Source of the DNA: Chrysemys picta bellii
Lineage: Eukaryota
Assembly: GCF_011386835.1 (NCBI RefSeq)
Contig: NC_088803.1
Coordinates: 32,860,001 to 32,924,000 of the forward strand
Direction of reading: 5' to 3'
Length of the DNA: 64,000 bases
The notes beneath the pieces are model-generated. The model did not search any database. It was not told the DNA's origin and saw only the letters and a program-made list of their open reading frames with translations. Shown here piece by piece: positions 10,779-64,000 of this stretch; the first letter of the stretch is position 1; every line of letters starts with the position of its first letter. Both the position numbers and the translations under genes were made by a program.

Positions 10779-10807
10779 TAAGTCCCATTGAAAGTCAATG
10801 GGACTTA
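10779..10807. repeat. Perfect 13-bp palindrome, core of a short palindromic interspersed repeat
   Basis: TAAGTCCCATTGA-AAG-TCAATGGGACTTA; related half-motifs near 6345-6370 and 6612-6637. Confidence 0.6.
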
Positions 10808-28847: not shown

Positions 28848-29126
28848 GGCTTGGTCTACACTTAAAATTAGATGGATCTAGCTACGTCACTCAGGGCTGT
28901 GAAATTTTTCACACCTCACATGCTATAGTTGCATCAAATTAACTCTTGGTATAGGTGCAGATAGGTTGATAGAATTCTTCCATCACCCTAGTGACTACTG
29001 CTTGGAGAGGTCAATTAACTACTTCAATGAGAAACACCCATCCATCAATGTAGGAGGCATATACTCTGGCTCTACAGCAGCATAGCTGCATCACCGTAGC
29101 TGTGTTACTGTTGTATAGACATAGCA
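28848..29126. mobile_element. Harbinger MITE (279 bp)
   Basis: GGCTTGGTCTACACTT / GTATAGACATAGCA ends, same TIR family as 73-4817; TTA TSD at 28845-28847 and 29127-29129. Confidence 0.8.
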
Positions 29127-29342
29127 TTAAGATGTCCTATAATGCTACTAAGAACCAAGCAGGCATCAAACAACCGAAAGAGAATGTCTTGCTCATTTTC
29201 TCCCTTGTACTCCAAGGTTTGACTTGGCATAAGGTGCCATAATTGGTCAGATGTCTAGTATCCTGTCTCTGACAGTGGCTAATACCAGAAGAGACAAAGG
29301 CAGCATCTCCTTCCCCCGCCAAGTCCTTTCTATAATTGAACT

Positions 29343-29533
29343 GAGGGATAGCTCAGTGGTTTGATCATTGGCCAGCTAAACCCAGGGTTGTGAGTTCAAT
29401 CCTTGAGGGAGCCACTTAGAGATCTGGGGCAAAATCAGTACTTGGTCCTGCTAGTGAAGGCAGGGGGCTGGACTCAATGACCTTTCAAGGTTCCTTCCAG
29501 TTTGAAGAGATAGGATATCTCCATTAATTTATT
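29343..29533 (+). mobile_element. tRNA-derived SINE with CR1-type 3' tail (turtle polIII/Cry-type SINE)
   Basis: A-box GGATAGCTCAGTGG, B-box GAGTTCAATCC, CR1 tail GGACTCAATGACCTTTCAAGGTTCCTTCCAG; imperfect TSD TATAATTGAAC / TATAATTTAAC. Confidence 0.85.
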
Positions 29534-32500: not shown

Positions 32501-32840
32501 TCATGCACAATCCTAAATGAGGGAAGGGTGTAAATGCATTAAACAAAAAGTAATTAAACAGTGAGAGAGATGACTATCAAACAGCAACAGATTGTTATTG
32601 CCTAACGACTGGTGAGTCAATATTTGATTTTGATTGAACCTTGGGGCAGCTAGTGAGTGATGGACTAGTAGAAACGCCCTGAAGCCAGAACGTGTGATCA
32701 TACTGCATTCACTAGCATCTAGCTTTCCAAAGTAAGTCACTTGTACCCTGTGAACCAGAAAGGTAGTTTCAGTCCACTGGTATTTTAGTTTCTGCCACTG
32801 TAGTGCCAGGCATACAAAGCAAAAGGTGAGGACAGTGCCA

Positions 32841-33273
32841 CAGGGGTGACCAACCTGTGGCTCTGGAGCCACATGTGGCTCTTCAGAAGTTAATATGCAG
32901 CTCTTTGTATAGGCACCGCCTCTGGGGCTGGTGCTATAGGCGCCAATGTGCCGGGGTGTGTGTGTGTGTGTGCTCACTGCTCAACCCCTGGCTCTGCCAC
33001 AAGCCCTGCCCCCGCTCAACCCCTTCCCGCCCCCTCCCCTGAGCCTGCTGTGCCCTCGCTCCTTCCCCTTCTCTTCTGCCCCTCCCCCCCCCCTCCTGCA
33101 TGCCACAAAACAGCTTATCGGGGGGGAGAGGCATTGATTGGCGGGGCTGCCGGTGGGTGGGAGGCACTGGCAGGCGGGCGGTGGGGGGGTGCTACTGACA
33201 TATTACAGTGGCTCTTTGGCAATGTACATTGGTAAATTCTGGCTCCTTCTCAGGCTCAAGTTGGCCACCCCTG
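32841..33273. mobile_element. hAT-type MITE
   Basis: TIRs CAGGGGTGACCAAC / GTTGGCCACCCCTG (13/14); TSD not preserved. Confidence 0.75.
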
Positions 33274-33384
33274 CTTTATGTCTACACCAGGGATGGGCAA
33301 CCTACGGCCTACGGGCTGAATCCAGCCCGTCAAGGCTTTGAATCTGGCCCGTGGGATTTCCGGCCCCTGGTGGACACAGCCTAA

Positions 33385-33482
33385 GCCTTAATGTCTACAC
33401 CACACCTTAGTCTGAGCCCTGCAAGCCTGAGCCAGCTGGCATGGGTCAGACATGGGTTTTTAATTGCAGTGTAGACATACCC
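33385..33482. mobile_element. Small Harbinger MITE remnant
   Basis: ATGTCTACAC near 33391 and GCAGTGTAGACATACCC ending 33482, followed by TTA. Confidence 0.55.
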
Positions 33483-34539
33483 TTAGAAGCACCTTCACTA
33501 ATGACGCCTTTCAAATGGCAAGTATTGGTGAGATTACAGCTGGGTGAATAAAATGCAGCCAATAACTGGTTTGACCGATTTAGAATGGGCTTTTCAATAG
33601 CGGCCAGTGTTGATCTATCTGTTCCCCTTGAATTAAACAGGAGTTTTCTAGCATTGACTTAATGGTGGTAGCGGTAGACCAAAACTGAATGCTCTTGCTA
33701 AATACCTTTAGCCTCCCTCTTCTGGCTGTCACAACAGCTTATTATTTCCTCAAATTATTCGAATAATGCTTGGAGGGTAGCTTGTTGCAAGTGCTCGAAA
33801 GCTAAAATTCAAGCTGTTTAATTTTCACTAGTACTGCTTATCTTCCTTGATTTGATATGCATGACTTTTAGAATTGGGATTCTTGTGAAAATGTGGACTT
33901 TTTCAACTCAAAATCTACTTTCAGTGGATATTTTCTAATGTCCACTTAAATTGTGGTTTCTGCAAACACTTTCTACAGTAAACTCTTGTTAGGACACATG
34001 CAAAAAGCAAATCTGTTTAAAAACACCTGAGTATTTCTGCAGACTCTAATTACCAGTGCTTTGGAACAGGGTACAATGGTGAACAAAAAAGTAAATCTCT
34101 GTACTTGTGGGAAGTAACTTTGTGTGTGAGCAATACCACACAAGTAGAGGTTATGCAGCGTACCTATACACACCTTGGGGCTGGGTTACACCTCATAAGT
34201 GCAGTTCCCATACACCTACATTACTTGTATAGCCACTCTCCTTTGATGAGCCAGTACTTTGGAATATGGCGAAACAAGCCATCAAATTGAATTTTTTTTA
34301 CCCATCTCCATCATCCCCAAGCCAGATGCACTTCTTCTGAATGATGAAGGGCTAGATATCTAGCTCTGTGATGACATTTGGAGTCAGCTAGATGGGTTGC
34401 TAGAACACATATGGCTGTGGTCCTAGTTCTTAGTAGCCTGGAAGAGAAGGATCTTCCTGTCTTGGGCTTTGTCTACACTAGAGGAATTATTAGCAGAAAG
34501 CGTGCAATGGTGCTAATGCTGGTGGAAAGCTGATCTTTT

Positions 34540-34760
34540 GGTGAAGGCACTGGACTGGGACTCAAACTATTAATACCTGGCTCTATCAGGGTTCAGTTCC
34601 CAGCTCTGCCCCAGACTCCCTTTCTGACCGTGGATAAACAGCTTAATGTCTGTGTGCATGGGGATGATGATGATGATGTATCCCTATCGGACAGGGGTGT
34701 TGTGAGGATAAATTCATTAAAGCTTGAGAGATGCTCAGATACTACAGGGATGGAAGACAT
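34540..34760 (+). mobile_element. MIR/CORE-SINE-like ancient repeat
   Basis: GCACTGGACTGGGA...TTCCCAGCTCTGCC...GACC motif followed by a GTTGTGAGGATAAA tail. Confidence 0.5.
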
Positions 34761-35272
34761 GTTAGATAGTCCAGTATAGATAGGAGCTTTTAGGTCTAAA
34801 ACTCTCTCGAGCCGCAGTGAACTGATCAGCGACTGTAGGGCTAAGACAAATCCTTGCAGCAGGAGGTGTTCAGCCCAGAGTATCTGGGAGCAAGGGAGTG
34901 GAGCCAACTCTGCAAGATTGCTGACTGTGCCACGCCAGCTCCCCAGGTGCTGAAATAAGATGTCCTTATGCAAGGTTGTGCAGAAAAGCAAACCATAACA
35001 TGTGAGAGCATTAACAGGTGTGGGAATAATCCATCTGGGATCATCCTGTATACTCCAGGGCATAGTGAGTTTGACTAAATTGTGGGAACATAAGATGATC
35101 ATTTTGCCAAACAATAACAACCAAAAGCAGCATGAAAGTCTCATTATACAGCCAGACATGTTTCTGAATGAGAACTGACTGGGGGAGCTACTGATCTAGA
35201 CAGGCAAGTCATGCTTACTTGTGTAATGAGAGAGTCAGGCTCTGGGCCTCATGGCGTCTTCTGTTTCTGCAG

Positions 35273-35440
35273 GTGATCGCTCTGGTTATGGATTCCTTCA
35301 CAGATATTGATATCTTCAGTGATCTTCAGGAAGCCTATAGAAAGCGGAAGATTCCGGTCTACATCCTTCTGGACCAAGATTTTCTACCCCACTTCATGGA
35401 AATGTGCAGGAGTCTGGGAGTCTGCCCTGAGCAGGAAGGT
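35273..35440 (+). CDS. FAM83D: FAM83D exon 2 (copy 1)
   Basis: CTGCAG|GTG...GGT|GTAAGT, 168 nt; [21 protein letters not shown]...VYILLD. Confidence 0.95.
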
Positions 35441-36703
35441 GTAAGTATTAGAGGCGTTTTCTATGGTAAATTATAGCATTGCCTTTGAAAGACACGCCAG
35501 TATTTCACATGCTGCCTATAGTTGAACATTTTAGATACTCTTTTATGTTTGTTTGGAAGCCTCTGTGTATCCCAAAGGTTGGGGATTTACACTGCAGGAT
35601 TTGAATCTGGGCTCTGCATTAACCCAACATGATAGGCTCCCAAAACCAGCAAGAGCCACGTAGAAGCAGCATATTGGCCCTTATCCCAACTTATACGTAT
35701 TGTATTGCAATACTATTCAGAGGCCACAGTTGTAGGGAGTAGCCCCATTGTTCTGAGTGCCATACGTACGTATAGGAAGAGACTGTCCTTGTCCCGAAGA
35801 GCATGCATTCTAAATCACATGTGGCTTTTATAATCTGTTCTCCCCTCCCCCCATAATATGCATTTCTTTTTAAATGAAGTGTCAAATGTCAGACCCACCT
35901 GATGTAGTCATGTAGGTCATGTGATGTATTCCAGTTCTTCAGAATCCGTTTTAATTATGAATAATTAAAAAAAAAAATTCTAGCTCTCATGGTTGAGGAA
36001 TCTTCCAAGCGTAAAGCTATGCAGTGTTGCCTTAAGTTTTCAGAAATCTTGAAGTGTGAACTCCCCTGCCCCTGATTTACTCTCACTGAGAGGTTGGTAC
36101 TAAAGCCCAATGATGACATTCAGGGGACAGAATAAGGGATGGAGTAGGATTTGGAAGTTTCTGCAGGGCAGGAAATGCAGAGGGACCAAAAGGGTGGTGG
36201 GGACAAAGGTAGGGAAGAAATAATGGTACCCCCAAAGATGAGGCTATTTTCCCAATAAGTGCTGCTGAATGTGAAAATCTGGTACTAAATCACTAATGAT
36301 TAAAAGTTCAATTATTACAGACAAGGCCATTTCTACCTTCGATCTTTGTGCAAACCTCCAGTTGACAATAGTGAGAGTTTCTTTTAGTCCTAACCTATGC
36401 CTTGACTAATGACCCATAATTAAAATGGAATTGGGGCATCTCTGCAGATTGAGTCTGACATCTCTGTAAGCTGTGTAGAGACAAGGAACTCAACCACATT
36501 TATCTCTATAGTGGTTAGCACAAATTTGCTGTTATTAATGGTTAATAATAGTGTCACTTACTGTCCAGCAAGTATTAATACTAAGTGGTATTAAGCAAGT
36601 CAGTTTCTTTCCTCTCTCCACTGCATGGTTTATATGTTTATATGTTGAAGAGAATTGTTGACTCTTATGAAAATCAGTTTAATGTATTTTTTCTTTTAAA
36701 CAG

Positions 36704-36828
36704 CTGATGAGAGTTCGAACTATAACTGGGAACACTTACTACACAAGGTCAGGAGCTAAAATTGTTGGGAAAGTCCATGAGAAGTTCATGTTAATTGATG
36801 GCATTAGAGTGACGACAGGCTCCTACAG
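36704..36828 (+). CDS. FAM83D: FAM83D exon 3 (copy 1), GC donor
   Basis: AAACAG|CTG...TACAG|GCAAGT, 125 nt; [41 protein letters not shown]. Confidence 0.93.
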
Positions 36829-37296
36829 GCAAGTTCTGGGGTCCTTTGCATTTCTTTAGGTCTTTGTGGGGAGGAGATTTCTGCAAGAAGTGAAAACTAA
36901 CTTGAAAGATATAGGATTGGCTCAAAAGCAATATTGGTGGTTCATCTATCTAATGCTATTAACTTTTTGAATCTGAATCAGCCTTGAGTAATGGGAAATT
37001 GAGAGTGGCTGCATTTCAATTGAGCGCTCAGATCCATAGAGGAGGATCATGGGGAGGAAAACATTTTGTCTCATTGCTTCTGTTTCTGGCAGGCTGAGCT
37101 CCCTAGTACGCTATTTCCTGTAACTTCCACCATTTGTGGGAACTTTCTACCATTTGTATTATTCAAACACCTACAGCCAGTTGTGCAAGGGCAAGCATAT
37201 TTCTCACTTAGTTTTTGTTGCTGCATCAGAGATGAAACCTAGTTGCATGGTGGATTCCTAAAAACCAGTGCACAACCACATGACCATACGTTAGCT

Positions 37297-37706
37297 CAAT
37301 GGTTTTCAACCAGGGGTATGGATACCCCTAGAGGTACACAGAAGTCTTCCAGGGGGTACATCAGCTCATCAAGATATTTGCCTAGTTTTATAATAGCTTA
37401 CATAAAAAGCACTAGCAAAGTCAGTACAAACTAAAATTTCATACAGACAATGACTTGTTTATACTGCTCTATATACTATACGCTGAAATGTAAGTACAAT
37501 ATTTATATTCCAGTTGATTTATTTTATAATTATATGGTATAAATGAGAAAGTCAGCAATCTTTCAGTGATAGTGTGCAGTGATACTTTTGTATTTTATGT
37601 CTGATTTTGTAAGCAAGTAGTTTAAGTGAGGTGTAACTTGGGGATACAAAAGACAAATCGGACTCCTGAAAGGGGTACAGTAGTCTAGAAAGGTTGAGAG
37701 CCACTG
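37297..37706. mobile_element. hAT (Charlie-like) MITE in FAM83D intron 3
   Basis: CAATGGTTTTCAACC / GGTTGAGAGCCACTG ends; flanks CGTTAGCT / CATTATCT (6/8). Confidence 0.75.
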
Positions 37707-37921
37707 CATTATCTCAACAGGCTTCTGTATGACTATGGCATAAAGTGTCATCGATTGCATAAGGACTGGATATGGATAGCCCTAATGGAAAGTTATACCT
37801 CACCTAAACACATAACCCGCCTAATCTGTACTTGTCACTCGGTGTGTGTATAGTTGTACTATTCATTCTAATGTACCAGTTAAAGTGAGATTAACTGTGA
37901 ATCTCCATTTGTTTTCAATAG

Positions 37922-38879
37922 CTTCACGTGGACTGATGGGAAATTAAATAGCAGTAACTTGTTGCTGCTGTCAGGCCAAGTGGCTGAACACTTTGATCTG
38001 GAGTTCAGGATCCTTTATGCACAGTCAAAACCGATCAGCCCTAAGCTGCCATCCAGCTGCCGGAGCAGTGGAATATTTGATCACCTGGTCAATGGAATAA
38101 AATCACCCAAAGACTACACTGTGGGAAACCTCTTGAGAGCCGAGTTGGCCAGACTGTCAAGCACCCCCAAGAAACCACTGAAAAAAACAGATTTGGCTAA
38201 CAACACTGAAGGAAGCAAATCCTATAACCTAGGTCCTTCCTACATCGGCACAGAGGAGTGGTTTGGAAGTCAGGAGGCCATAGTGGAACCAAAGGAGGTG
38301 AACAGCATGTCTACTCAAACTGAACCATGGGAAGAGAAGCCCACAGTGACACTCTCTAATGCTGTCACGCAAACCAGTGTTGTAATGGTAGCATCTGGAA
38401 CCCAAACCTCTGTTGCTGCTAGAATGGCTGGCACTCAAACAGTTGTGCCACGGAAGACTGCTATGACCCAGACAGACAAGAAGGAGAGTGTGGAAGAGCA
38501 TCTACTGCTGAGACAACAATCGAAAGAAGGATCTCCTTCATCTGGAAAGTCCACATCAACTTCTTCTAGTCTACGGTCACTTTCTTCATCATCTTCCCAG
38601 TGCTCTCTGGCAAGCTCTACCAGCTCGCTGTCCTCTCTGAGGTCCATTGAGTACTCTGGCAACCACAGGGCAGAGTACTTCCAAAAACTGCATAAAGAGA
38701 GGCAGGTCCACTACTCTGTTATCAGGTCCAAACTTAACCATATGGTTGCTATCCTCTCCCGAAGGGGACGCGTGCCTGAAAACTGTACAAGCTGCCACGT
38801 TGTAAGCTGCAATGTAAAACAGAGGCGTGAGATCAGCACCAGCCTACTCAGCCTCAGAGACATTTCAGTGTTCAAATAA
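37922..38879 (+). CDS. FAM83D: FAM83D exon 4 (copy 1); spliced CDS 1713 nt = 570 aa
   Basis: CAATAG|C TTC ACG TGG; FTWTDGKLNSSN, HFDLEFRILYAQSKPISPK, LARLSSTP, five TQT motifs (38313-38474), Ser-rich tract, IRSKLNHMVAILSRR; TAA ends at 38879. Confidence 0.96.
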
Positions 38880-44490: not shown

Positions 44491-45348
44491 CAGGGCTGCC
44501 CAGAGGGGGGGGCAAGTGGGGCAATTTGCCCCAGGACCCGCAGGGGCCCCCACGAGAATATCAGAGGCTCCCCCCCAGTGCCTCAGCACGCCGTGTCCAA
44601 GAGCGGCCCTGGACAGCACTGCAGTGGTGTGGCCTGAGCTCCTCCCACTCGGAGCCGCGGGGTAAGGGGGTGGGGCTCCGGGCCAAGAGGCGGGAGCTCA
44701 GGTCCCGTGGAGCCATGCTGCTGCAGCGCTGTCTAGGGCTGTTCATGGATGCCACGTGCTGAGGCTCTGGGAAAGGGGGGGAGGCGGGAGTAAGCAGCAT
44801 GGTAAGGGGGCCAGGGCCAGGCACCCCCTGACCCCATCCCCCCCACAGCCCTGACCCCCAGCTCTGAGCCCAGCCCCTCTGAACCGGACACCTTCCCCAA
44901 CCCCCATCCCCCCTACAGCCCTGACCCCCAGCTCCAAGCCCAGTCCCTCTGAGCCGGGCACCCCCCAACGCCATCCCCCCACAGCCCTGAGTCCAGCCCC
45001 TGTGAGCCGGGCATCCCCCTCCCGACCCAGAGCCCAGCTCCCCACCCAGCCCTGGGCAACAGCAGCACCACCCCCAGGCAGTGATGGCCCATTGGCACCA
45101 ACCATCACCATCACCCAGCGACAGCCCATTATGTAATTGCAAATGTATACATACCATTAAAGCATTTAATGTTTTTAAATAATGTATTTTGTGTATTTTC
45201 AAATTATTAAAAATTAATTTTTGAATTTATTTCAATGGTTATTTTTACATTTCCAAATACATGTTACTAGAGTATTGCAACTTTTTTTATGGAAGGGGCC
45301 CCCGAAATTGCTTTGCCCCAGGCCCCCTGAATCCTCTGGGCGGCCCTG
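44491..45348. mobile_element. hAT-type MITE (858 bp) just upstream of the FAM83D copy-2 promoter
   Basis: TIRs CAGGGCTGCCCAGAG / CTCTGGGCGGCCCTG (14/15); perfect 8-bp TSD CATTAGGG (44483-44490, 45349-45356). Confidence 0.92.
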
Positions 45349-45356
45349 CATTAGGG

Positions 45357-45555
45357 AGCCTACCAGCCGCTTGAACTCAACGACCGTCGCTCCCTTCAGC
45401 CTGGGAAGGTGCAAGAGGAGGAGGCAGGGCCCGGCGCTGGGTGGGAGGTGGAGGAGAATTGGGGTGAGGGGGCGTTGGCTGGGTTTAAAACTCCTCATAA
45501 AAGGCCTGGTTTAGTGACTACCCTTGCGGGCTAATAGCGGCGGCCGCGGCTCCCC
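45357..45555 (+). promoter_or_regulatory. Candidate core promoter of the FAM83D-like copy 2
   Basis: ATTGG 45458-45462; GGGTTTAAAACTCCTCATAAAAGG (45481-45504) aligns to copy-1 GGGTTCAAACTCCCTATAAAAGG. Confidence 0.6.
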
Positions 45556-46017
45556 ATGGCGAACCAGTCCCAGTGCCTGGAGGACGCCCCCGGCCGCTGG
45601 TTCCCCGGGGAGCCGAGCTCGCCCGAGCTCTACAGCGAGGCGCAGCGGCTGGCGCTGGAGGAGCTGGTGGCGGGCGGCCGGGCCGCTTTCCGCGCTTTCC
45701 TGCGCCGGGAGAAGGTGCCCGGCTTCCTCTCGGAGCCCGAGATCCAGGCCATCCTCCAGGCGGCCGCAACGCCGGCCGGGGCCGAGGACGGGGCGGCCGA
45801 GCCCTCGCTCAGCGCCTCGCTGGACTGCTCCTCGCTCACCTACTTCCCCGAGCAGTCGGACGTGGAGCCGCCCGTGCTGGAGCTGGGCTGGCCGGCCTTC
45901 TCCAGCGGCTCGTACCGCGGCCTCACCCGCGTGGAGGCGCTTTTCCAGCCCAGCTTCGGGGAGACCATCTACAGCTGCAAGGAGGCGGTGCGCAGGCAGA
46001 TCCGCTCGGCCAGGGAG
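45556..46017 (+). CDS. FAM83D-like paralogue (copy 2) exon 1
   Basis: 462 nt, differs from 24184-24645 at only 2 positions (45588 synonymous, 45602 S16F); donor GAG|GTGAGT. Confidence 0.85.
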
Positions 46018-46856
46018 GTGAGTCCCCAGCCCGGCCTCTGCGCCCCCTTCCTGCCCGAGCCGAGCCTCCTCCTCCGGGCGCCCTGGGAAACCCGGGGGGA
46101 TACTGCTCTGCACAACGCTCCTCTGTGCCTGGGGAACTAGGAGCCTAGCCCTGGACGCCGGTGTTGCACTAAAGACCCGCTGGCTTTGGTCCCTAATCTC
46201 CAACCAGCTAGGATTAAATTCTGAAATCTGCACTTTAGCATTATTATTTATTGCATTTAAAAACAAATCACTACTTTAATATTTGGTCTTGTAGAAACGT
46301 GTGACATTCATGGTGGTGGTGAGCTTTCCTCTGTGGATAGGCCATCACTACAATCCTGCAGGAGAATGAAGGAAGGGAGAGGCTCCTCAGGGCAGGGATC
46401 CTGTCTGCTTTGTGATAAAATCTCTCATACTTTAGAAACTAGTCTTTCGGCAAGGTATGTGTTATATGCAGAATAAATGACAGTGTAGTGTGCTTATGGA
46501 CACTCATTGGCCTTGGCTAGCTCACTTGGGACCTTGGCAATTATGAGTAATGTGGTCATCCCAAAACACATGCTTGTGGCACCTTAGTATCACACCATCA
46601 CACAGTGTGTCTTTTAAATAAAACCTGATAACTTGTGTCTAACGCACAATGGGTGCTATGTACATAATTCACCTGGGGATCACTCATGCCACGTCTAGGA
46701 TGGAATATAGCAGCCTTCTGCTTGTACAGTAACTCCTCACTTAACATAGTAGTTATGTGCCTGAAAAATGCAACCTTAAGCGAAACAATGTTAAGCGAAT
46801 CCAATTTCCCCATAAGAATTAATGTGAATGGGGGGAAAGTAGGTTCAAGGGAAATT

Positions 46857-46984
46857 NNNNNNNNNNNNNNNNNNNNNNNNNNNNNNNNNNNNNNNNNNNN
46901 NNNNNNNNNNNNNNNNNNNNNNNNNNNNNNNNNNNNNNNNNNNNNNNNNNNNNNNNNNNNNNNNNNNNNNNNNNNNNNNNNNNN
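46857..46984. other. Assembly gap (128 N)
   Basis: Run of N. Flanks are collinear with about 60 bp of CA/TA-rich sequence (57640-57699) in the intact inverted MITE copy. Confidence 0.99.
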
Positions 46985-47209
46985 CAAACAATTTAATACT
47001 GTACACAGCAATGATTATTGTGAAGCTTGGTTGAGGTGATGGAGGAAGAGGGTGGATATTTCCCAGGGAATGCCTTACTGCTAAATGATGAACTAGTACT
47101 CTGCTGAGCCCTCAAGGGTTAACACATTGTTGTTAATGCAGCTTCACACTCTACAAGGCAGCACAAATGGAGGGAGGGGAGACAGCATGGCAGACAGAGA
47201 TACACACCC

Positions 47210-47242
<33 letters not shown>

Positions 47243-47302
47243 TGCGCTCATTGCCCCTTTAAGTACGCTGACCCCACTCTAAGTACACTGCCTTTTTAAG
47301 TA

Positions 47303-47495
47303 TCAGGGGGTAGCTGTGTTAGTCTGTATCTACAAAAACAACGAGTCTGGTGGCACCTTAAAGACTAACAGATTTATTTGGGCATAAGCTTTCGTGGGTA
47401 AAATGCATCTGAAGAAGTGAGGTTTTTACCCACGAAAGCTTATGCCCAAATAAATCTGTTAGTCTTTAAGGTGCCACCAGACTCCTTGTTGTTTT
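47303..47495. mobile_element. Penelope-derived palindromic mini-insertion nested in the Tigger MITE
   Basis: Perfect 61-bp inverted repeat (47343-47403 / 47424-47484, 20-nt loop). 14-bp TSD TGCCTTTTTAAGTA (47289-47302, 47496-47509). The empty site is present once, reverse-complemented, near 57307-57320. Confidence 0.85.
47405..47445 (+). ncRNA. Minimal type I hammerhead ribozyme motif (Penelope-type)
   Basis: Stem I GCAT/ATGC, core CTGAAGA, stem II GTG(A)GGT-TTTT-ACCCAC, GAAA, palindromic stem III AGCT, NUH = CUU. Confidence 0.65.
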
Positions 47496-47992
47496 TGCCT
47501 TTTTAAGTAGATCAGCAAGTTGAGACAGCAGCTGCTGCCAGCAAGCTCCCTCCCGTGTTCCCCCCCTGCTCTATGGAGATGGAGTAAGTCGGGGGCAGGG
47601 AGAGGGGGACACCCTGACATTAGCCTCCCTCCCCCCCTGCACAGCAAGCAGGAGGCTCCTGGGAGCAGCTCCAAGGCAGAGGGCAGGAGCAGCACGTGGC
47701 AGTGTGGGGAGGGACAGCTGAACTGCCTGGCAATTGATGGCCTGCTGGGCGACTGCCACACAGGGAACTTAGGAGAGCAGGGAGCTGATGGTCCGCCCTG
47801 GTTCCAAGCCCCCACCAGCTAGCTGCAATGGGCTGCTCTTTCTGCAAGCAGTGGACAAAGCAGGGGGCCGCCAAATGATGTTATAAGGGAGGATTGTACA
47901 ACTTTGAACAAGCATGTTCTCTAATTGATCAACAGCATAACAACAAAACAGCGTTAACCGGGACGACTTTAAGTGAGGAGTTACTGTAGTCG

Positions 47993-49272
47993 TAGAATCA
48001 TAGAATATTAGGGTTGGAAGAGACCTCAGGAGGTCATCTAGTCCAACCCCGTGCTCAAAGCAGGACCAACACCGACTAAATCATCCCAGTCAGGGTTTTT
48101 CAAGCTGGGCCTTAAAAACCTCTAAGGATGGAGATTCCACCACCTCCCTAGGTAACCCATTCCAGTACTTCACCACCCTCCTAGTGAAATAGTGTTTCCT
48201 AAGTTCCAACCTAGACCTCCACTACTGCAACTTGAGACCATTGCTGCTTCTGTCATCTGCCACCACTGATAACAGCCGAGCTACATCCTCTTTGGAACCC
48301 CCCTTCAGGTAGTTGAAGGCTGCTATCAGATCCTCCCTCACTCCTTGTAAGTCATGTGCTCCAGCCCCCTAATCATTTTCGTTGCCCTCTGCTGGACTCT
48401 CTCTCCAATTTGTCCACATCCCTTCTGTAGTGGGGGGGGCCAAAACTGGATGCAATACTCCAGGTGTGGCCTCACCAGTGCCGAATAGAGGGGAATAATC
48501 ATTTCCCTTGATCTGCTGGCAGTGCTCCTACTAATACAGCCCAACATGCCGTTGGCCTTCTTGGCAACAAGGGCACACTGCTGACTCATATCCAGCTTCT
48601 CATCCACTGTAATCCCCAGGTCCTTTTCTGCAGAACTGCTGCTTAGCCAGTCGGTCCCCAGCCTGTAGCGGTGCATGGGATTCTTCCTTCCTAAGTGCAG
48701 GACTCTGCACTTATCCTTGTTGAACCCCATCAGATTTCTTTTGGCCCAATCCTCCAATTTGTCTAGGTCATTCTGGATCCTATCCCTACCCTCCAGCTAA
48801 TCTACCTCTCCCCCCAGTTTAGTGTCATCTGCAAACTTGCTGAGGGTGCGATTCATCCCATCATCCAGATCATTAATAAAGATGTTGAACAAAACCGGCC
48901 CCAGGACTGACCCCTGGGCACTCCGCTTAATACCGGCTGCCAACTAGACACTGAGCCATTGATCACTACCCGTTGAGCCCGACAATCTAGCCAGCTTTCT
49001 ATCCACCTTATAGTCCATTCATCCAATCCATACTTCTTTAACTTGCTGGCAAGAATACTGTGGGAGACCGTATCAAAAGCTTTGCTAAAGTCAAGCTATA
49101 TGACATCCACCGCTTTCCTCATATCCACAGAGCCAGTTATCTCATCATCGAAGGCAATCAGGTTGGTCAGGCATGACTTGCCCTTGATGAATCCATGTTG
49201 AATGTTCCTGATCACCTTCCTCTCCTCCAAGTGCTTCAAAATGAATTCCTTGAGGACCTGCTCTATGATTTT
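47993..49272 (-). mobile_element. 5'-truncated CR1 LINE (about 1.3 kb)
   Basis: Minus strand carries QHGF, DFSKAFD and FADD RT motifs, LYSALVRPHLEYC, the 3'UTR and an ATTCTATG tail. Confidence 0.93.
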
Positions 49273-49460
49273 GCTGTGGCTAGTCTTAAATTAGTCCCAC
49301 TTAAGTTTTTCAGAGGAGAACTGAAGAACATCTCTACTTAGATTTCTCCCTATGATATCAGCTATGAAGGCAGAGTGTAATTATCCAAGCTGGATCTTGG
49401 CCAGGCCATCTAGACTAATAATGCTTCCTTTGTTCAAAATGTTGTGGGATCCCTAATGAC

Positions 49461-51026
49461 TAGGGCTGTCAATTAATCACAGTTAACTCACGCGATTAAC
49501 TCAAAAAAAATTAATCATGATTAATTGCAGTTTTAATCACATTGTTAAACAATAGAATACCAATTGAAGTTTATTAAATATTTTTGGATTTTTTTCTAGA
49601 TTTTCAAATATATTGATTTTAAATACAACACAGAATACAGTCTACAGTGCTCACTTTATATTATTTTGATTACAAATATTTGCACTGTAAAAATTATAAA
49701 AAAAGAGACATAGTATTTTTCAATTCACCTCATACAAGTACTATAATGCAATTGCTTTATTGTGAAAGTGCAATTTACAAATGTATTTTTGTTTGTTTGT
49801 TACATAACTGCACTCAAAAACAAAACAATGTAAAACTTTAGAGCCTATAAGTCCACTCAGTCCTACTTCTTGTTCAGCCAATCGCTAAGACATACAACAT
49901 TGTTTACATTTTTGGGAGATAATGCTGCCTGCTTCTTATTTACAGTGTCACCTGAAAGCGAGAACAGGCGTTCACATGGCACTTTTTTAGCTGGCATTGC
50001 AAGGTATTTACATGTCAGATACGCTGGTGACGCTTGTTCAAAAAAAATGCATTAATTAAATTTTGACTGAGCTCACTGTGGGGGAGAACAGTATGTTTCC
50101 TGCTGTTTTACCTGCAGTCTGCAATATATTTCATGTTATAGCAGTCTCGGATGATGAACCAGCACATGTTTTTCATTTTAAGAACACTATCACTGCAGAT
50201 TTGACAAAACGCAAAGAAGGTACAATGTGAGATTTCTAAAGATAGCTACAGCACTCAGCCCAAGGTTTAAGAATCTGAAGTGCCTTCCAAAATCTCAGAG
50301 GGACAAGGTGTGGAGCATGCTTTCAGAAGTCTTAAGAGAGTAACACTCCGATGCGGGAACCACACAGAAAGAAAATCAACCGTCTGCTGGTGGCATCTGA
50401 CGCAGATGATGAAAGTGAACATGCGCTGGTCTGCACTGTTATCAAGCAGAACGCACCATCAGCATGGACGCGTGTCCTCTGGAATGATGGTTGAAGCATG
50501 AAGGGACATATGAATCTTTAGCTTATCTGACACGATAAATATCTTGCGACGCCGGCTACAACAATGCCATGCGAACGCCTGTTCTCACTTTCAGGTGACA
50601 TTGTGAACAAGAAGCAGGCAGCATTATCTCCTGCAAATGTAAACAGACTTGTTTGTCTGAGTGACTGGCTGAACAAGAAGTAGGATTCTGTGGGCTTGTA
50701 GTCTCTAAAGTTTTACATTGTTATTTTTGAATGCAGTTATTTTTTTGTACATAATTCTACATTTGTAAGTTCAACTTTCATGGTGAAGAGATTGCATTAC
50801 AGTACTTGTATGAGGTGAATTGAAAAATTATTTTTTCAGCACAAATATTTGCAATCAAAAATAAATTGAGCACTGTACTCTGTTCTGTCAATATATTTGA
50901 AAATGTAGAAAACATCCAAAAATATGTAAATAAATGGTATTCTATTATTGTGTGATTTAATCATGATTAATTTTTTTAATCATGCGATTAATTGTGATTA
51001 TTTTTTTTAATCACTCCACAGCCCTA
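49461..51026 (+). mobile_element. Internally deleted hAT transposon (1566 bp) with C-terminal dimerisation-domain remnant
   Basis: TIRs TAGGGCTGT / ACAGCCCTA; perfect 8-bp TSD CTAATGAC. Remnants PRFKNLKCL and KYLATPATTMPCERLFSLSGDIVNKKQAALSPANVNRLVCL (about 50250-50681). Confidence 0.92.
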
Positions 51027-52763
51027 CTAATGACAATACAGTATTTCTTCTCATCTAAAGAAATGATAGTAAAGGGGAAAACAATTCACACCAGTGAAGG
51101 TATTTGCTGTGCTGAGAAGTTCCTTTTCCTTGCATACTCAAACCCTTTGCAGATACCCCTGGTGAAGTCAGTGATCCTTTCCAAGTTTTGGGACTGAAGC
51201 AGTCCTTCTCTTCAAGCAGTACATTTACAGGAAGAGGGGACAATCCCACAATCTGTGACTTAGGATGTGTCTATCAAAATGGCTTGCATTTATGTTGCAT
51301 CTCCAACTTGGGGTACTTCAGTGTAAGAAACTTCAAGCTAAGAATTAACCATCTTGCCAAAGTTCTGTTTTGGACTGGATATTTACTCCCCATTTCCATA
51401 TCTCAGTTTATTAAGTGGCTGAATGGTATTAAAGGTCAACTATTTGGTTGTGAAAGGCTGGTGGTGAAACACTTATTTTTAAAAAAATGTGTCTAAGTAA
51501 GCTTCTTACTAGCCCACTCATCTGGTGTTGGAGAGCAACCTGTGGTCCCTGCCTGCCCTGGTGGGTCTTGGGATCAATTTAGAGGTGGGGGAAATGAAGG
51601 AACGTTAAGACCTATGTGGCTCAACCTTGCAGGTGAAGTCCTGCAATACACAAGAGGGAACATAGAAAACAAATATAATTAAACAGTGAGCAAGATGCTG
51701 CTGAGCAAAGACAAACTGAGATAGTGCTCCCTGATAAGTGATGATTCAGTACTTGATTCTGAATGTATATAAGATTCCTTTTCCTGAGTAACTTATGCAT
51801 TGACAGAAAGGACTGACAACCAGCAATCTCTCTTTCCCAATTCACTTACCTGCCTTCAGCTATTTAATTGTGTCATTTACACCCTATGAACCAAAGAGAT
51901 GTAGTCCCTATTCGCAGACTCTCTAGTTCCTGCTATTGCAATTCCAGGTGTACAAAAGGAAACCACGTGGATGGTATAGCAAAGAATCTTAGATGTACTT
52001 TCTTTTTATACATTATCAAATGGTAAGTGTCAAAGACAGAATGAATACTCTAAGAAGCAGACTCCCATCATCCTACGAGTTCAGTATCTGTTTCCATTTT
52101 ACTATGTATGACTTTGTGGAAGCGATGATATGCAGAGATTGATTATAATGGGTATCCATTATACTTTAGGTGTGTGTGAAGCAACATATTTGACACCTAA
52201 CAGATGTATAGTACCCATGTGTTTTCCCTTTGAAGTGCTGTTAGCTTAACCTAAACCCATTCCCTTACCCTTCCATCCCTCAGTATCATGGTGTCCTCTC
52301 TTACCTTTGATGCAGAGCAATATAAAAAGCTTTCCCACTGTAGAGCCTGCACATACAGCTCTGATTCAGCCAGAGATTTGTCTGTCATCAACAAGTTGGT
52401 TCAAGAAAAGCTATTACGTCATCCACCTTATCTCTCTAATATCCAGGGACTGATGCAGCTACAACATTACATATCTAAATTATCCAGTACTTGACACACT
52501 TGTGGAATGCTGCTAAGAATGACCGAACAGGTTGACTATGTCACAATAAAATAACACTTAAAAAAAGTAGCAAGGAAAATGGAAACTTGTCTAGGGAATA
52601 TGGTATCAATAAAAGGAAACCAATCAGGGGTCTACTTAATTTGGAAGCTAAATTGATTCATACACCCTCTGCCCCTTCTAAATCTTCCCCGGGGTGCTGA
52701 GAAAGATAAGACATAGGTCACAAGGTTTTCTTGAACTAATGGTTTCTTCTGTATTTGTTTCAG

Positions 52764-52931
52764 GTTATTGCTGTGGTTATGGATACCTTCACAGACATTG
52801 ATATCTTCAAAGACCTTCAGGAAGCCTGTAGCAAGCGGAAAGTTAGTGTGTACATCCTTTTAGATCGTGCTTCATTTCCCCACTTTCTGAAAATGTGCAG
52901 AAATCTAGGAGTTGATCTTGAGCAGGAGAAG
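52764..52931 (+). CDS. FAM83D-like copy 2 exon 2
   Basis: TTTCAG|GTT...AAG|GTAGGC, 168 nt, open; [34 protein letters not shown]; 41/168 nt differences vs copy 1 (manual count). Confidence 0.88.
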
Positions 52932-53772
52932 GTAGGCACTGTGATACTTATGGCAACAAACAACTGGTTATTGGCCCTATTGCAACCATAACATCTAAGT
53001 TTTAAAAAGAAATATGATCTATGTAGCGCTTGCTCTTTTTTTGTAAGTTTTAACTGATCTTGAAAAACAAGGCATTAACTGCACAAACGATGATGTCTTT
53101 AGAGGTGCATTAACACCCATGTATTATATTGAAGTGATTTTTGTCTTTAACACTTGTTATGGGATTGCTGAAAGCACTGCAGACACTTTTTTCTTTATTT
53201 AAATAGCTGTAGCCATCTCATAAAGTAAATTGACTTTCCTTAGAATTGGGAATCTTTCTGACGAATGTCTTAATGTTTCTGGCCCAGATGATTAAAGTTT
53301 TTTCCTTCTTCTAGGAAATCTGTTGAAAGAGAGGTTCTCTTCCCACAAACATAAATTATTTAAAGGGGGAGGGGACTCATACAGGGTAAACACATAATCC
53401 ACTATATTTTTTAGTCACTTCTTTTGTAAGGACACAAAGGAGGTTTCAGTTCAGTTTAGTCCATTTCTTATTCCCTGAAGGACAAATACGTTGAGTGGTC
53501 TTGTTAGTCCAACAGTGTCAAGGCTCTCTGCTTTACAAAGAGGGAGACTAAATTCTGGTTCAGATTTTCACTTCGTGTTTTGCTCCCTAAGCCACAAGAA
53601 CCCCTTAGAATGGTCATTTGACTCCTTAGGAGAGAGAATCTTATGCCACTCAGCAGCATCCTGTGTTAGCTGATCAACAGCGGTCTTTAATGTTTGTAAG
53701 TTTCCCTCTTAGGTAGAAACATTTTCTCTTGATATGTCAAAACTTAAATACGTTTTTTTCTCTTTCAAACAG

Positions 53773-53897
53773 CTGATGAGAGTTCGAACTATATCGGGAA
53801 ACACTTATTGCACAAGGTCAGGAGTCAAAATTGTGGGGAAGGTCCAAGAAAAGTTTATCTTGGTTGATGGCATAAGAGTGACAACAGGTTCCTACAG
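53773..53897 (+). CDS. FAM83D-like copy 2 exon 3, GC donor
   Basis: AAACAG|CTG...TACAG|GCAAGT, 125 nt; [41 protein letters not shown]; 18/125 nt differences vs copy 1. Confidence 0.88.
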
Positions 53898-54168
53898 GCA
53901 AGTACCCTATTTCTTTTCATGTCCTTGTCTCCTATGACTTCTTTGGATTGTGGGGTGAAGGGTAATAGTACAAAACTGTTTTTCTTGTGAGCTGTTGATC
54001 GTATGTGATGTTTGCACTAAAAATTATGTTGCTAACTATCCGTAGTACAGTAACAATCTAGTTTCTTGTATTGAAAGAGAACATGTATTGGCACTATTTC
54101 AACCTTTGTGTGGGTGTATTATTTATTTTAATAAATTAACATCATTTGTGAATTTTCTCATTATTAAG

Positions 54169-54559
54169 TTTCACATGGACTGATGGGAAACTAAGCAGCA
54201 GTAACATCTTGATTCTGTCGGGCCCAGCAGTCGCACACTTTGACCTGGAATTCCGGATCCTTTTTGCTCGGTCAAAGCCCATCAACCCCAAACTGTCATC
54301 CAGTTGCAAGAAGAGTGGAATGTTTAATCAGCTGGTTAGGAGAACAAAGGCTTGCAGTGACTTGATGAAGGAAAACTTCTTGAGAATGGATTTTTTCTAC
54401 CTTAGAGCATTTGTAGGAAACATGAGAAGGAAACAGAGCTTCTTGTATGCCTCCAGGGAGGCAAAGTGTGAGTCAAATATCATCATGCAAGCATCTCCAC
54501 CGTTGACTGAGAGGAATGTCTCTGCAGTCATGAGGCCACGTTGGAGCATAGAGAGGTGA
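54169..54559 (+). CDS. FAM83D-like copy 2 exon 4 (short); spliced CDS 1146 nt = 381 aa
   Basis: ATTAAG|T TTC ACA TGG; FTWTDGKLSSSN, HFDLEFRILFARSKPINPK, then a diverged tail ending RPRWSIER-TGA (54557-54559). Confidence 0.82.
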
Positions 54560-55020
54560 GCACTGTCCACTCAACTTGAAAGATAAGAGCCACTGTGCCC
54601 ATATCCAATGCTTCCTTGCAAACCAATGTTGTAATGGTAGCCACTGGAAAACAAACCTCAAATTGAGAGATGGCAATACTCAAACAGTGGTTCTACTGAA
54701 GACCACTACAACTCAGGCCAACAAACATAAGACTGGTATTGTCTCTGCCTCCAAGGTGTGGATAACTCTCTTGTTAACTTCTTCTAGTTTTCAGTCATTC
54801 TCCTGTACTTTCCCATCCTCTACTAGATCAGTATCATCTTAACTCAATGGCTCTGGTTATTCTAAAGACTCTGGCTACTGAAAAGAACAATGCTTAAAGA
54901 TCTCCTTCTGAAAAATAAATAGAGGGGGACACTCTTCTGCTCTGAAATCAGGTCCAAGCTCAATCCTGTGTTTGGTAACCTCTCCAGCCAGGGACATTTG
55001 ACTGAAAAATGACATGGATA
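54560..55020 (+). pseudogene. Vestigial, frameshifted remnant of the FAM83D C-terminal tail downstream of the copy-2 stop
   Basis: Fragments STQLE, GKQTS, GNTQTVVLLKTTTTQANK, TSSSFQS and ATCAGGTCCAAGCTCAATC align to copy-1 STQTE, GTQTS, GTQTVVPRKTAMTQTDK, TSSSLRS and IRSKLNH; stops and indels intervene. Confidence 0.8.
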
Positions 55021-55724
55021 GCCAAACATAACATATAACCTCAATTAGATGGAAAAAGATCGATGTCAGCCTACTGGGCCTCGGACATCACACCCTTTCT
55101 TCAAATGAATGGCCGCAGCTAGGTGGAGCAAGTTAGTGCATCAGCTGCTTTTAAGCACTGTTGTTTGCAGTGTTGTTGTGGCCATGTTGGTCTCAGGATA
55201 TTAGACAGACAAGGTGGGTGAGGTAATATCTTTTATTGGATCAACTTCTGTTGGTGAAAGAGACATGCTTTTCAAGCTTACACAGAGCACTGTTGTGGTT
55301 CTACCTAGGCAACTTATTACACCATGCACAGTGAAGTACTTGAAGCATTAAAACATAGAAGTGCCTTAATTTGCTATTTGAGTTTTGAACAAATTACATT
55401 ATTTTAAATATACAATATCCTTTTTGTTTTGTAATTAAGTATGGATAAGGTTGCAAAAAGATTATAAAAAAAATCTTTTTTTAGATATTCATTTCTCTAG
55501 AATACTTTTTTTTTTCTATGCTGAAGCTTTCCCTATTTGCTTTTGCAGAACCAAATGAAGCCCTACTTCGTTATATCATTGTACGTTCTCCATACCTGGC
55601 CTGACAGGCACAGGGGCTGTTGCTTTCAGTCTACTCTTGGGACAAGTTTTATGAGAGATTTTGAAATGCAGGGGGAATCCTCCTCCCCCCACTGCACACA
55701 TTTCCCCAAAATCAGATTGTATGT

Positions 55725-55997: not shown

Positions 55998-56727
55998 TAG
56001 GGTTACCATACATCTGTTTTTTCCCGGACATGTCCGGCTTTTCGGCAATCAAAACCCCATCCGGGGGGAATTGCCAAAAAGCCGAACAAGTCCGGGAAAA
56101 ATACCGGCCGGGCACTTCCCCTCCCGCGGCTGCTCTGCTCCTCCCCTCTCAGACTTCGGCTCTGTTTAAGAGCCAAGCTGCCCGAGCCAGCGCAACCGGC
56201 TTCAGGCAGCCCCCCGTGCCTCCGGACCCCAGCCGCCGGCCGGACACTTCCCTTCCCGGGCTCCAGCTGTTCTGCTCTGGCGGCGCAGGGTCTGGAGGCA
56301 AGGGGGCTGCCCGAAGCCGGTAGCGCTGGCTCGGGCAGCTTGTCTCTTAAACAGAGCTGAAGAGTCAGGGGAGGAGCAGGCGGGGGTGCGGGGTCCGGAG
56401 GCATAGGGGCTGCCCGAAGCCCGAGCGCTACCGGCTTCACGGGTTTGCCGGGCAGCCTCCAGACCCTGCGCCCCCGGCTGGGCACTTCCCCTCCAGGACT
56501 CCAGCTGTGCTGGGGAAGCGCCGGCCAGGGGCGCAGGGTCTGGAGGCTGCCCGGCAAACCGTGAAGCCGGTAGCGCTTGGGCAGCCCTTTTCGCGTGGCT
56601 GGGAGGGAGGAGGGGGAGTTAGGGCGGGGAATGGGCGGAGTTGGGGCGGGGCTGGGGTTGGGAAAGGGGCGGGGCCGGGGCCCCGTGGAGTGTCCTTTTT
56701 TTTTATTTTTTAAATATGGTAACCCTA
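55998..56727. mobile_element. GC-rich hAT-type MITE (730 bp)
   Basis: Perfect 13-bp TIR TAGGGTTACCATA / TATGGTAACCCTA; flanking direct repeat ATTTAGG (7 bp). Confidence 0.88.
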
Positions 56728-56805: not shown

Positions 56806-57836
56806 CAGTAACTCCTCAACTAACGTCATCCCGGTTAACGTTGTTTCGTTGCAGATCAATTAGAGGATGTGCTCGTTTAAAGTTGCACAATACTCCCTTA
56901 TAATGTTGTTTGGCAGCCGCCTGTTTTGTCCACTGCTTACAGAAAGAGCAGCTTGTTGGAGCTAGTTGGGGCTCAGAACCAGGGTGGACCAGCAGTCCCC
57001 CTATCAGCTCCCCTAAGTTCCCTGTGGTGCAGCCGCCCAGCAGGCTACCAATTGATGGCCAGTTCAGCTGTCCCTCCCCCCCCGTGCCGTGTGCTGCTCC
57101 TGCCCTCTGCCTTGGAGCTGCTCCTTGGAGCCTCCTGCTTGCTGTGTGAGGGTGGGGGGGAAAAGAGGGGTGCTAATGTCAGGGTGTTCTCCTGCCCCCC
57201 TCCACCCTGCTCCTTTACCCCATCTCCACAGAGCAAGGGTGGGACACAACAGGGCTTAGGACAGAGGGAGGTTGCTAGCAGCAGCTGCTGTCTCAACTTG
57301 CTGATCTACTTAAAAAGGCAGTGTACTTAGAGTGGGGTCAGCGTACTTAAAGGGGCAATGCGCATCTCTCTCTCACCCACACGGGGGGTCTGTGTCTCAC
57401 ACACACACACACACACACACACAGTGTGTCTCTGTCTCTCTCTGTGTCTCCTCCCTCCATTTGTGCTGCTTTGCAGAGTGTGAGGCTACATTAAGAATGT
57501 ATTAACCCTTGAGGGCTCAGCCGAGTATTAGTTCATCATTTAGCAGTAAGGCATTCCATGGGAAATATCCCACCCTCTGACTTCACCACCTCAACCAAGC
57601 TTCACAATCATCATTGTTGTGTACAGTATTAAATTGTTTAAAACTTATACTGTGTGTGTCTGTGTATAATATATAGTTTTTTGGTCTGGTGGAAAAAAAA
57701 ATTCCCTGGAACCTAATTCTTCCCCCACCCCCAATTTACATTAATTCTTAAGCTAATCCAATTTCCCCATAACATCATTTTGCTTAAAGTAGCATTTTTC
57801 AGGAACATAACTACAACGTTAAGTGAGGAGTTACCG
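56806..57836. mobile_element. Tc1/mariner (Tigger-like) MITE, inverted relative to 46727-47986
   Basis: CAGTAACTCCTCAACTAACGT / ACGTTAAGTGAGGAGTTACCG; TA TSD at 56804-56805 and 57837-57838. Confidence 0.9.
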
Positions 57837-58453: not shown

Positions 58454-58633
58454 CATAGAATCCTAGAATATCAGGGTTGGAAGGGACCTCAGGAGGTCAT
58501 CTAGTCCAACCCCCTGCTCAAAGCAGGACCAATCCCCAGACAGATTTTTTGCCCCAGATCCCTAAATGGGCCCACTCAAGGATTTAATTCACAACCTTGG
58601 GTTTAGGAGGCCAATGCTCAAACCACTGAGATC
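58454..58633 (-). mobile_element. tRNA-derived SINE with CR1 tail
   Basis: Minus strand: CTCAGTGGTTTGAGCATTGG head, then a CR1 3' end almost identical to that at 47993-48065. Confidence 0.85.
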
Positions 58634-63299: not shown

Positions 63300-63664
63300 C
63301 CTTCCACGCCCCGCTATTAAAGATCAAGGCACAAAGCCCCTAGGAGCCTGCGCCTCGCCCTGGGGTGCTGCCGGGCCGCCCCTGAGGGGAGGGGCCTTCT
63401 GGCTCCAACCTTGGCGCCCATCACCCTAGTCTCTGGGCGCCTCCTCTGGTGGGGGAGGGAGCTGCCGGGGCCCAATGGGGCCCCCTGCTCCCCTACGACT
63501 CAGGGCTGGGAAGGGCAGGGCACAGAAAAGAACAACTGCGGCTAGCCCGCGGGACCGATGCTATGGCAACGGCCGGCCAATCACATAGCTCATCACGTGA
63601 CACACAGCCCCGCCCCTTGCAGTGGGCGGGGGGCGTCACTTCCTTTTTGACCTTTCACCCCAAG
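63300..63664 (+). promoter_or_regulatory. DHX35 CpG-island promoter
   Basis: X-box-like GATGCTATGGCAAC 63557-63570, CCAAT 63577-63581, CACGTG 63594-63599, GC boxes, GTCACTTCC 63635-63643, YY1-type CAAGATGGCGGC over the start codon. Confidence 0.75.
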
Positions 63665-63704
63665 ATGGCGGCGCCCGTGGGACCGATGAAGTTTTGGAAA
63701 CCCG
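63665..63704 (+). CDS. DHX35: DHX35 (DEAH-box helicase 35) exon 1
   Basis: MAAPVGPMKFWKP(G)|GTGAGG, 40 nt; matches the recalled vertebrate DHX35 N-terminus and the expected synteny after FAM83D. Confidence 0.88.
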
Positions 63705-64000
63705 GTGAGGGGCGAACGGGCCCTGGAGGGAGGGAGTCACTGGGGAGCAAAGGCCGGGGATAGGTACCGCTGGTGCTAGTCCTCTCTGCTTCCCTTCGCC
63801 GGGACCTGGCCGTGCCGCCCGGCAGGAGCCTCTTGGGCCTCCCCTCGTCCCATCTCCTATTGGCGCTGCCCGGGGCTGGGGCGAAGCTGTTCAGTTCTTA
63901 CCCTTCCCCACCACAGTGACCCGGAGCTGGTGACTTAATGGTCTGTAATTATTCCCCCTCCCCCAGAGTCTCAGGGTGGGTGGGCCATTTAAGTTCACCT

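Follow-up and report, generated by a model that had tools for sequence, protein, structure and literature searches.

Downstream of the canonical FAM83D gene, the turtle Chrysemys picta bellii carries a second and shorter FAM83D-type gene, which we describe here from a stretch of 64,000 nucleotides (nt) of contig NC_088803.1 (assembly GCF_011386835.1, positions 32,860,001 to 32,924,000 of the forward strand; this stretch is called the window, and coordinates are counted from its first letter). We consider it likely that this short gene is an old sauropsid tandem paralogue of FAM83D (also known as SACK1D or CHICA) that has a frameshifted tail, is maintained by constraint and encodes an anchor for the kinase CK1 that acts off the spindle. 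Mammals have a single FAM83D, and work on the FAM83/SACK1 family has been almost wholly mammalian. The short gene model is already public in RefSeq, and a literature search found no published description of the gene. What appears to be undescribed is a ninth FAM83-type gene, its conserved frameshift-born tail, its loss of the FAM83D control modules and the concerted evolution that is limited to one of its exons.

In the history that we propose, FAM83D would have been duplicated in tandem no later than in the most recent ancestor that all living sauropsids share, and the additional copy would have stayed between FAM83D and DHX35. A net loss of 1 nt in exon 4 after the duplication would have created a new 51-residue C-terminus and a stop, which would remove the TQT repeats that bind DYNLL1, a Ser-rich phospho-region and the helix that binds HMMR and carries the degron, with the old segments left to decay in the 3' untranslated region (UTR). 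The GC-rich exon 1 would have been overwritten repeatedly by gene conversion with FAM83D. With its SACK1/DUF1669 domain intact, the short protein is predicted to anchor CK1, and most likely the CK1alpha isoform. HMMR would not transport it to the spindle, it would have no coupling to dynein light chain, its CK1alpha binding would not be confined to mitosis and it would escape destruction at mitotic exit; the conserved new tail may bring in another partner or direct the protein elsewhere.

The short paralogue consists of four exons on the forward strand at 45556-46017, 52764-52931, 53773-53897 and 54169-54559 (462, 168, 125 and 391 nt, 1146 nt together), which form an open frame of 381 amino acids (aa) ending in a TGA at 54557-54559. 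A preliminary description made from the letters of the window had proposed a complete four-exon gene of this length, and its exons and open frame are borne out, with splice sites that are GT-AG at introns 1 and 2 and GC-AG at intron 3. Exon 1, an open frame that runs to a GT donor, holds codons 1-154 and with them the N-terminal half of the SACK1 domain. Exon 2 lies between an AG acceptor and a GT donor and is present in RNA contigs. Exon 3, whose ends are joined in the RNA contigs, carries the CK1-binding Asp of the LVDG motif and is followed by the GC-AG intron. Exon 4 is composed of an ancestral-frame part (54169-54403), which holds the end of the SACK1 domain (HFDLEF) and a linker and is backed by the Pfam match, by substitution rates and by the net 1-nt loss near 54398, and a frameshift-born tail with the TGA (54404-54559; residues 331-381), in which the ancestral tail is recognizable in another frame. 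A 3' UTR with decayed remnants of the old tail follows at 54560-55190, as defined by tblastn and RNA contigs; an AATAAA is found at 54914 and an ATTAAA at 55347. Exons 2-4 occur once in the 2.37-Gb genome, and the exon 1 region occurs exactly twice. The 381-aa product is letter for letter RefSeq XP_065421923.1, which is named "protein FAM83D-A-like" of Chrysemys picta bellii.

The other FAM83D copy in the window (copy 1) is the canonical gene, at 24184-38879 on the forward strand with exons 24184-24645, 35273-35440, 36704-36828 and 37922-38879. Its 570-aa product is identical to RefSeq "protein FAM83D" of the same species. Intron 3 is of the GC-AG type in both paralogues (36828/36829 and 53897/53898), with the donor CAG/GCAAGT, which is used in RNA. 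Its presence in both copies indicates that the non-canonical donor is older than the duplication. The short protein aligns with that of copy 1 without gaps over residues 1-330 at 83% identity, and the similarity ends there. In exon 3, 16 codons differ between the copies and 10 of these are synonymous, exactly the numbers that had been counted before.

The abrupt end of protein similarity has its counterpart in a DNA alignment of exon 4 of the two copies, which reveals that the short gene has lost a net 1 nt near 54398; from 54404 to 54556 its final 51 codons are read out of the ancestral frame. A tblastn search with the tail of copy 1 against 54390-55200 returned collinear matches in frames +2, +1 and +3 with a linked E of 1e-12. 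These matches lie at 54415-54660, in a frame that is not that of the open reading frame (ORF), at 54648-54839 in a second frame and at 54941-55006 in a third. Given the net 1-nt loss and the matches in other frames, residues 331-381 represent a new reading of old sequence, and Emydura exhibits the same frameshifted-tail pattern. The TGA of the short gene is itself the out-of-frame GTGA of an ancestral ...GAG GTG AAC.... Remnants past the stop read STQ.., ..LQTNVVMVATGKQTS.., ..NTQTVV..TTTQ.. and SEIRSKLNPVFGNLS, all within transcribed 3' UTR. They follow the order of TQT repeats (about 54560-54740), a Ser-rich region and then the HMMR-binding helix, of which SEIRSKLNPVFGNLS is the decayed remnant (54941-55006). 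The preliminary description had placed the stop just before the first TQT motif and the rest of the tail in frameshifted remnants. The remnants are indeed there, but the truncation is not a simple one as the last 51 codons are already out of frame.

Copy 1 has the five TQT motifs that had been reported for it (starting at 38313, 38367, 38400, 38433 and 38466; span 38313-38474), and long forms have a median of five (76 sequences). No TQT motif is present in the 381-aa protein or in any of 62 new-tail sequences, in agreement with the claim that the whole TQT tail has been lost. The loss exceeds the TQT tail, as the Ser-rich region and the HMMR-binding C-terminal helix are absent from short proteins too. 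The long proteins have this helix as ...IRSKLNHMVAILSRR, and in copy 1 it is conserved with mammals. TQT remnants were not detected in chicken or emu. Recent conversion was considered as a source of the turtle TQT remnants and is unnecessary, since the copy 1 side is constrained, turtle rates are slow and the remnants contain indels among turtles.

The domain that precedes the new tail is complete. Pfam SACK1 (PF07894) matches residues 21-289 of the short protein over profile positions 8-274 of 274 (E 1.2e-101), a PLDc_2 match has an E of 4.9e-9, and copy 1 likewise has the full SACK1/DUF1669 domain (E 3e-100). FAM83D brings CK1alpha to the spindle via DUF1669, and mutation of the human residues D249 and F283 abolishes CK1alpha binding (PMC6726907). 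All 20 short sequences examined have unchanged equivalents of these two residues, and the F-x-x-x-F motif also keeps its second Phe. LVDG and HFDLEF are both present in the turtle short protein, as previously noted, so that with the full Pfam match and both CK1-binding residues in place the paralogue is predicted to have kept a CK1-binding domain.

To collect relatives of the short gene, exon 4 was used in an exhaustive profile search and the full protein in a word-based one. Cryptodire and pleurodire turtles have short forms of 365-407 aa, as do many birds, both palaeognath and neognath with emu among them, and several squamates (Hemicordylus, Elgaria, Tiliqua, Lerista and Rhineura); long forms of 560-600 aa are found in the same species. 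RefSeq labels the short gene either FAM83D-A-like or FAM83D-B-like. The order long gene, short gene, DHX35 that is seen in the window recurs in chicken, emu, Emydura, Chelonia and Carettochelys, which bears out the description of the gene as a tandem FAM83D paralogue. A maximum-likelihood tree of the part encoded by exons 2-4 (53 rows, 176 columns) unites all short forms in one clade (support 100/97) and all sauropsid long forms in another (100/96). From this topology the duplication is judged to be no younger than the divergence between lizards and the lineage of turtles and birds. The earlier suggestion of a "lineage-specific" adaptor has therefore to be abandoned, as the same short gene forms one clade across turtles, birds and squamates and has its stop in the same column in seven species. 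The short clade falls weakly outside a group of mammal, caecilian and sauropsid long forms (94/77), and a duplication placed on the sauropsid stem is not rejected by an approximately unbiased (AU) test (p 0.218). Given that weak placement and that p value, attempts to date the duplication more closely than "at or before crown sauropsids" failed.

Several features indicate that the coding sequence, with its new tail included, is under purifying selection. Seven species (four turtles, chicken, emu and a lizard) share the aligned column of the TGA, and their exon 4 has at most one indel, of two codons. The ratio of nonsynonymous to synonymous substitution rates (dN/dS) between species ranges from 0.13 to 0.45 over the domain part of exon 4, and turtle-bird, turtle-lizard and bird-bird pairs have values of 0.26-0.69 in the new tail. 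Among turtles there are no gap columns in coding exon 4, and 6-74 gap columns together with lower identity in the 170 nt past the stop. The indels thus begin right past the stop, which is where constraint ends. Additionally, an alignment of 46 short forms contains a near-invariant block, N-x-L-R-M-x-F-x-Y-L-R-A-F-x-G-N, that spans the frameshift point, and a P-P-L-T block further on. Purifying selection, which had been suggested from the synonymous changes in exon 3, is thus supported by ratios of 0.13-0.69 in deep pairs and by the shared stop column.

Exon 1 has a history of its own. A tract at 45536-46086 on the forward strand is shared with copy 1 (24164-24717) at 98.7% identity over 554 nt, and the two copies of exon 1 differ at only 2 nt (45588 and 45602). 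Identity falls to 77-86% in the other exons, and the introns cannot be aligned. Synonymous divergence (dS) between the copies is 0.009 in exon 1 and 0.57-0.88 in the other exons. Exon 1 has a GC content of 0.73 and an observed-to-expected CpG ratio of 0.87. Similar tracts cover exon 1 in chicken (498 nt at 98.8%) and emu (574 nt at 99.1%). Within species, exon 1 protein identity between the paralogues is 98-100% in 16 of 18 species, and between turtle and chicken it is 66%. The exceptions are two squamates, Tiliqua (87% between short and long protein) and Rhineura (68%), whose lineages seem to have escaped homogenization. This pattern indicates recurrent gene conversion that is confined to the GC-rich exon 1, and we infer a link to recombination hotspots at CpG islands.

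Evidence for transcription comes from public contigs. In three transcriptome-sized Chrysemys runs (X1, X2 and X5, from two studies) contigs join 52931 to 53773 and 53897 to 54169, and they depart from the genome sequence at 52762-52764, which is the exon 2 acceptor. A DNA run (X15) yields a single contig, which is collinear with the genome and lacks both joints. Exact removal of the introns, set against this collinear control, makes the runs look like RNA. The RNA contigs pass through the stop with no joint to 55190-55223, where RNA and DNA contigs alike break off in a very high-copy repeat (55191-55307; summed contig depth in the DNA run of about 1e6), so that they trace the transcript no further than this repeat. 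Of the three junctions that the preliminary description had singled out, 52931-53773 and 53897-54169 are thus found in three transcriptome-like runs, and 46017-52764 was not directly seen. A search of assemblies for exact matches to the 381-aa sequence had no hits. Some transcriptome-like runs do contain 47-73% of the sampled words of a copy-2-specific 195-nt segment upstream of the conversion tract, which is no more than suggestive of transcription from the exon 1 that belongs to the turtle short gene. For chicken there are two public contigs with a complete intronless ORF of 374 aa, and one of them starts 197 nt upstream, in a stretch that only the short locus has. These contigs fit exon 1 of the short locus at 100% and 99.8%, and that of the long locus at 99.1% and 98.2%.

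Two further observations concern exon 4 of the transcript. An old Chelonia mydas model (EMP38237.1, named DHX35) joins the short gene at ...WSIE to internal DHX35 exons, using a GTGAG that holds the stop. No joint at the corresponding donor-like AG/GTGAGC (54555) occurs in the RNA contigs, all of which read through, and a longer isoform of this kind is probably a prediction artifact. Position 54354 is G in the reference and in the DNA run (TGC, Cys314) and C in all three transcriptome-like runs (TCC, Ser314), and Ser314 is the residue of other turtles. This difference is a polymorphism or a strain difference and does not correspond to any known form of RNA editing.

A function for the short protein can be projected from studies of human SACK1D/FAM83D, in which HMMR binds a C-terminal helix (residues 514-585, with an ML-x-ML motif). 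The same helix restricts CK1alpha binding to mitosis and carries degron information, and a 1-514 truncation loses HMMR binding, binds CK1alpha outside of mitosis and is stabilized (PMC12803952). As the helix, the Ser-rich region and the TQT motifs are gone from the short protein while the domain is kept, behavior like that of the engineered human SACK1D(1-514) is expected. On balance we slightly favor the view that the short protein would be stable, would anchor CK1 independently of the cell cycle and would not be carried to the spindle.

Several points weigh against our overall explanation. In squamate short forms HFDLEF is changed to F(R/E)(R/L)RF, such that the acidic residues between the two Phe are altered, which could alter affinity for CK1. 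The alligator short form has 304 aa and diverges past about residue 290, and a crocodilian genomic contig has a short-type exon 2 at its positions 2196-2369 with alignable intron, and neither exon 3 nor exon 4 within the 1.6 kb that follow downstream; crocodilians may have a short gene that is rearranged or in decay. Among turtles, dN/dS of the new tail is noisy (0.39-4.8) with few substitutions, and exceeds 1 in some pairs. An AlphaFold2 prediction on the 46-sequence short-form alignment has a mean predicted local distance difference test score of 49, too poor for reading the tail. With regard to transcription, the Chrysemys runs are taken as RNA from their splicing pattern and size. The Chrysemys contigs also stop 26-183 nt into exon 1, and as the last 415 nt do not differ between the two copies of exon 1, these contigs do not directly link exon 2 to the exon 1 of the short gene.

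Of the alternatives, the one that survives best is that the short protein mainly competes with FAM83D for CK1alpha and tunes the amount of kinase on the spindle, having no anchoring site of its own. A decoy or dominant-negative role of this type would suit a protein that has the same CK1-binding determinants as FAM83D, a (nearly) identical stretch of 154 N-terminal residues and no spindle-targeting helix, and the human 1-514 truncation does bind CK1alpha constitutively (PMC12803952). However, a decoy needs the domain alone, and yet conservation of the 51-aa tail and its stop reaches back beyond the splits between turtles, birds and lizards, which makes it seem that the tail has a role. We therefore regard this role as rather unlikely.

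It is far less probable that the gene is a transcribed but functionless duplicate that is slowly decaying, with a frame that is still open because turtle genomes evolve slowly. The lost tail is still recognizable in the 3' UTR, and the turtle pairs with tail ratios above 1 and the shortened alligator copy would fit such decay. However, a near-constant open frame of 365-407 aa persists in dozens of fast-evolving birds and squamates, the stop column is the same in seven species, deep-pair dN/dS is well below 1, indels start exactly past the stop, and the CK1-binding residues are invariant. Furthermore, the introns of the two copies have diverged beyond alignment, and neutral sequence of such an age does not survive. 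With its open frame, used splice sites and deep-pair ratios of 0.13-0.69, the gene does not resemble an unprocessed pseudogene.

The assembly has one gap in the gene, a run of N at 46857-46984 in intron 1, which begins 840 nt past the exon 1 donor. As the gap is within intron 1, the reading frame is not at stake. Window segments 46018-46726 and 47985-48500 align to directly abutting stretches (10463-11167 and 11164-11722) of the orthologous intron 1 of Chelonia mydas, which contains no N. As its flanks abut in Chelonia, the gap sits inside a 1.26-kb insertion in intron 1 (46727-47984) that the Chelonia orthologue lacks. A dispersed repeat, for which there are at least 5949 candidate copies, occupies 46985-47984 to the right of the gap, and the assembly break is attributed to it. 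An assembly artifact is rejected on the basis of the single-copy exons 2-4, the two exon 1 regions, the collinearity with Chelonia and the loci of relatives, as the gapless loci of Emydura, Carettochelys, chicken, emu and Hemicordylus contain the same four-exon gene with its own exon 1. The related proposal that exon 1 at 45556 is a misplaced duplicate and that exons 2-4 are spliced to exon 1 of copy 1 as an alternative FAM83D 3' end could draw on the gap between exon 1 and exons 2-4, on the 98.7% identity of the exon 1 copies and on turtle RNA contigs that cannot show which exon 1 is used, but we give it next to no credence because beyond the 554-nt tract the surroundings of the second exon 1 are unlike copy 1, the sequence on either side of the gap is collinear with the gapless Chelonia intron, the relatives' loci have their own exon 1, chicken mRNA contigs carry the 5' UTR of the short locus and fit its exon 1 better, and some turtle transcriptome-like runs hold the copy-2-specific upstream words.

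The region surrounding the short gene has features of its own. A repeat of about 350 nt at 45000-45350, with at least 3210 candidate genomic copies at 94-95% identity, resembles a short interspersed element (SINE) and is apparently young. It lies upstream of the short gene's conversion tract, at a distance of about 190 nt, which makes the promoter region of the short gene unlike that of copy 1. GC content in the 500 nt before the ATG is 0.49 in the short gene versus 0.70 in copy 1. Downstream, the start of DHX35 lies at 63651-63711 on the forward strand, with 91.8% identity to the start region of DHX35 at positions 14469-14529 of the chicken locus. In the intergenic region, blocks 55998-56727 and 56806-57819 are not in the orthologous region of Chelonia, and there is a local rise in GC (0.53) there. 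Also intergenic is 58478-58630, which matches 29352-29499 in copy 1 intron 1 on the opposite strand (a 150-nt inverted match at 79% identity); the two are probably copies of an interspersed repeat.

If our overall explanation is correct, the short gene has shed every known control of its parent, namely coupling to dynein light chain, spindle targeting through HMMR, the confinement of CK1alpha binding to mitosis and the degron. It would then provide a natural test of a model that was derived from engineered human truncations, and chicken cells make this test tractable. The gene is also a clean case of a frameshift that created a coding tail which was later conserved, and a case of exon-limited concerted evolution that has persisted through sauropsid history. 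For annotation, the names FAM83D-A-like and FAM83D-B-like are borrowed from the -A and -B genes of Xenopus and mask a distinct orthologue group. More tentatively, and going further than we would defend with confidence, the gene might be a ninth functional SACK1/FAM83 member. As such it would be a separation-of-function allele of about 300 million years that acts as an off-spindle constitutive CK1 anchor, with a tail that has its own binding and an exon 1 that is converted at a CpG-island hotspot.

Three known systems come closest to the short gene. It is like FAM83D/SACK1D/CHICA in its SACK1/DUF1669 domain with the CK1-binding Asp and Phe, in its four exons with a GC-AG intron 3, in its position upstream of DHX35 and in an exon 1 that is nearly identical within species. 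It is unlike FAM83D/CHICA in that it lacks the TQT motifs, the Ser-rich hyperphosphorylated region and the HMMR/degron helix, has a 51-aa frameshift tail and forms its own clade. It is like the engineered SACK1D(1-514) (PMC12803952) in having no C-terminal helix, for which similar behavior is predicted, and differs in being cut at residue 330 of the ancestral frame, in lacking the TQT and Ser-rich regions as well and in having a conserved new tail. Finally, the eight FAM83 family proteins, A-H, share an N-terminal CK1-anchoring domain joined to a member-specific C-terminus that sets location (PMC6008594), and the short protein follows this design with a CK1-anchoring domain and a C-terminus of its own. 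Unlike these eight, it would be a ninth member that is so far found only in sauropsids, and that was born by tandem duplication of FAM83D and a frameshift.

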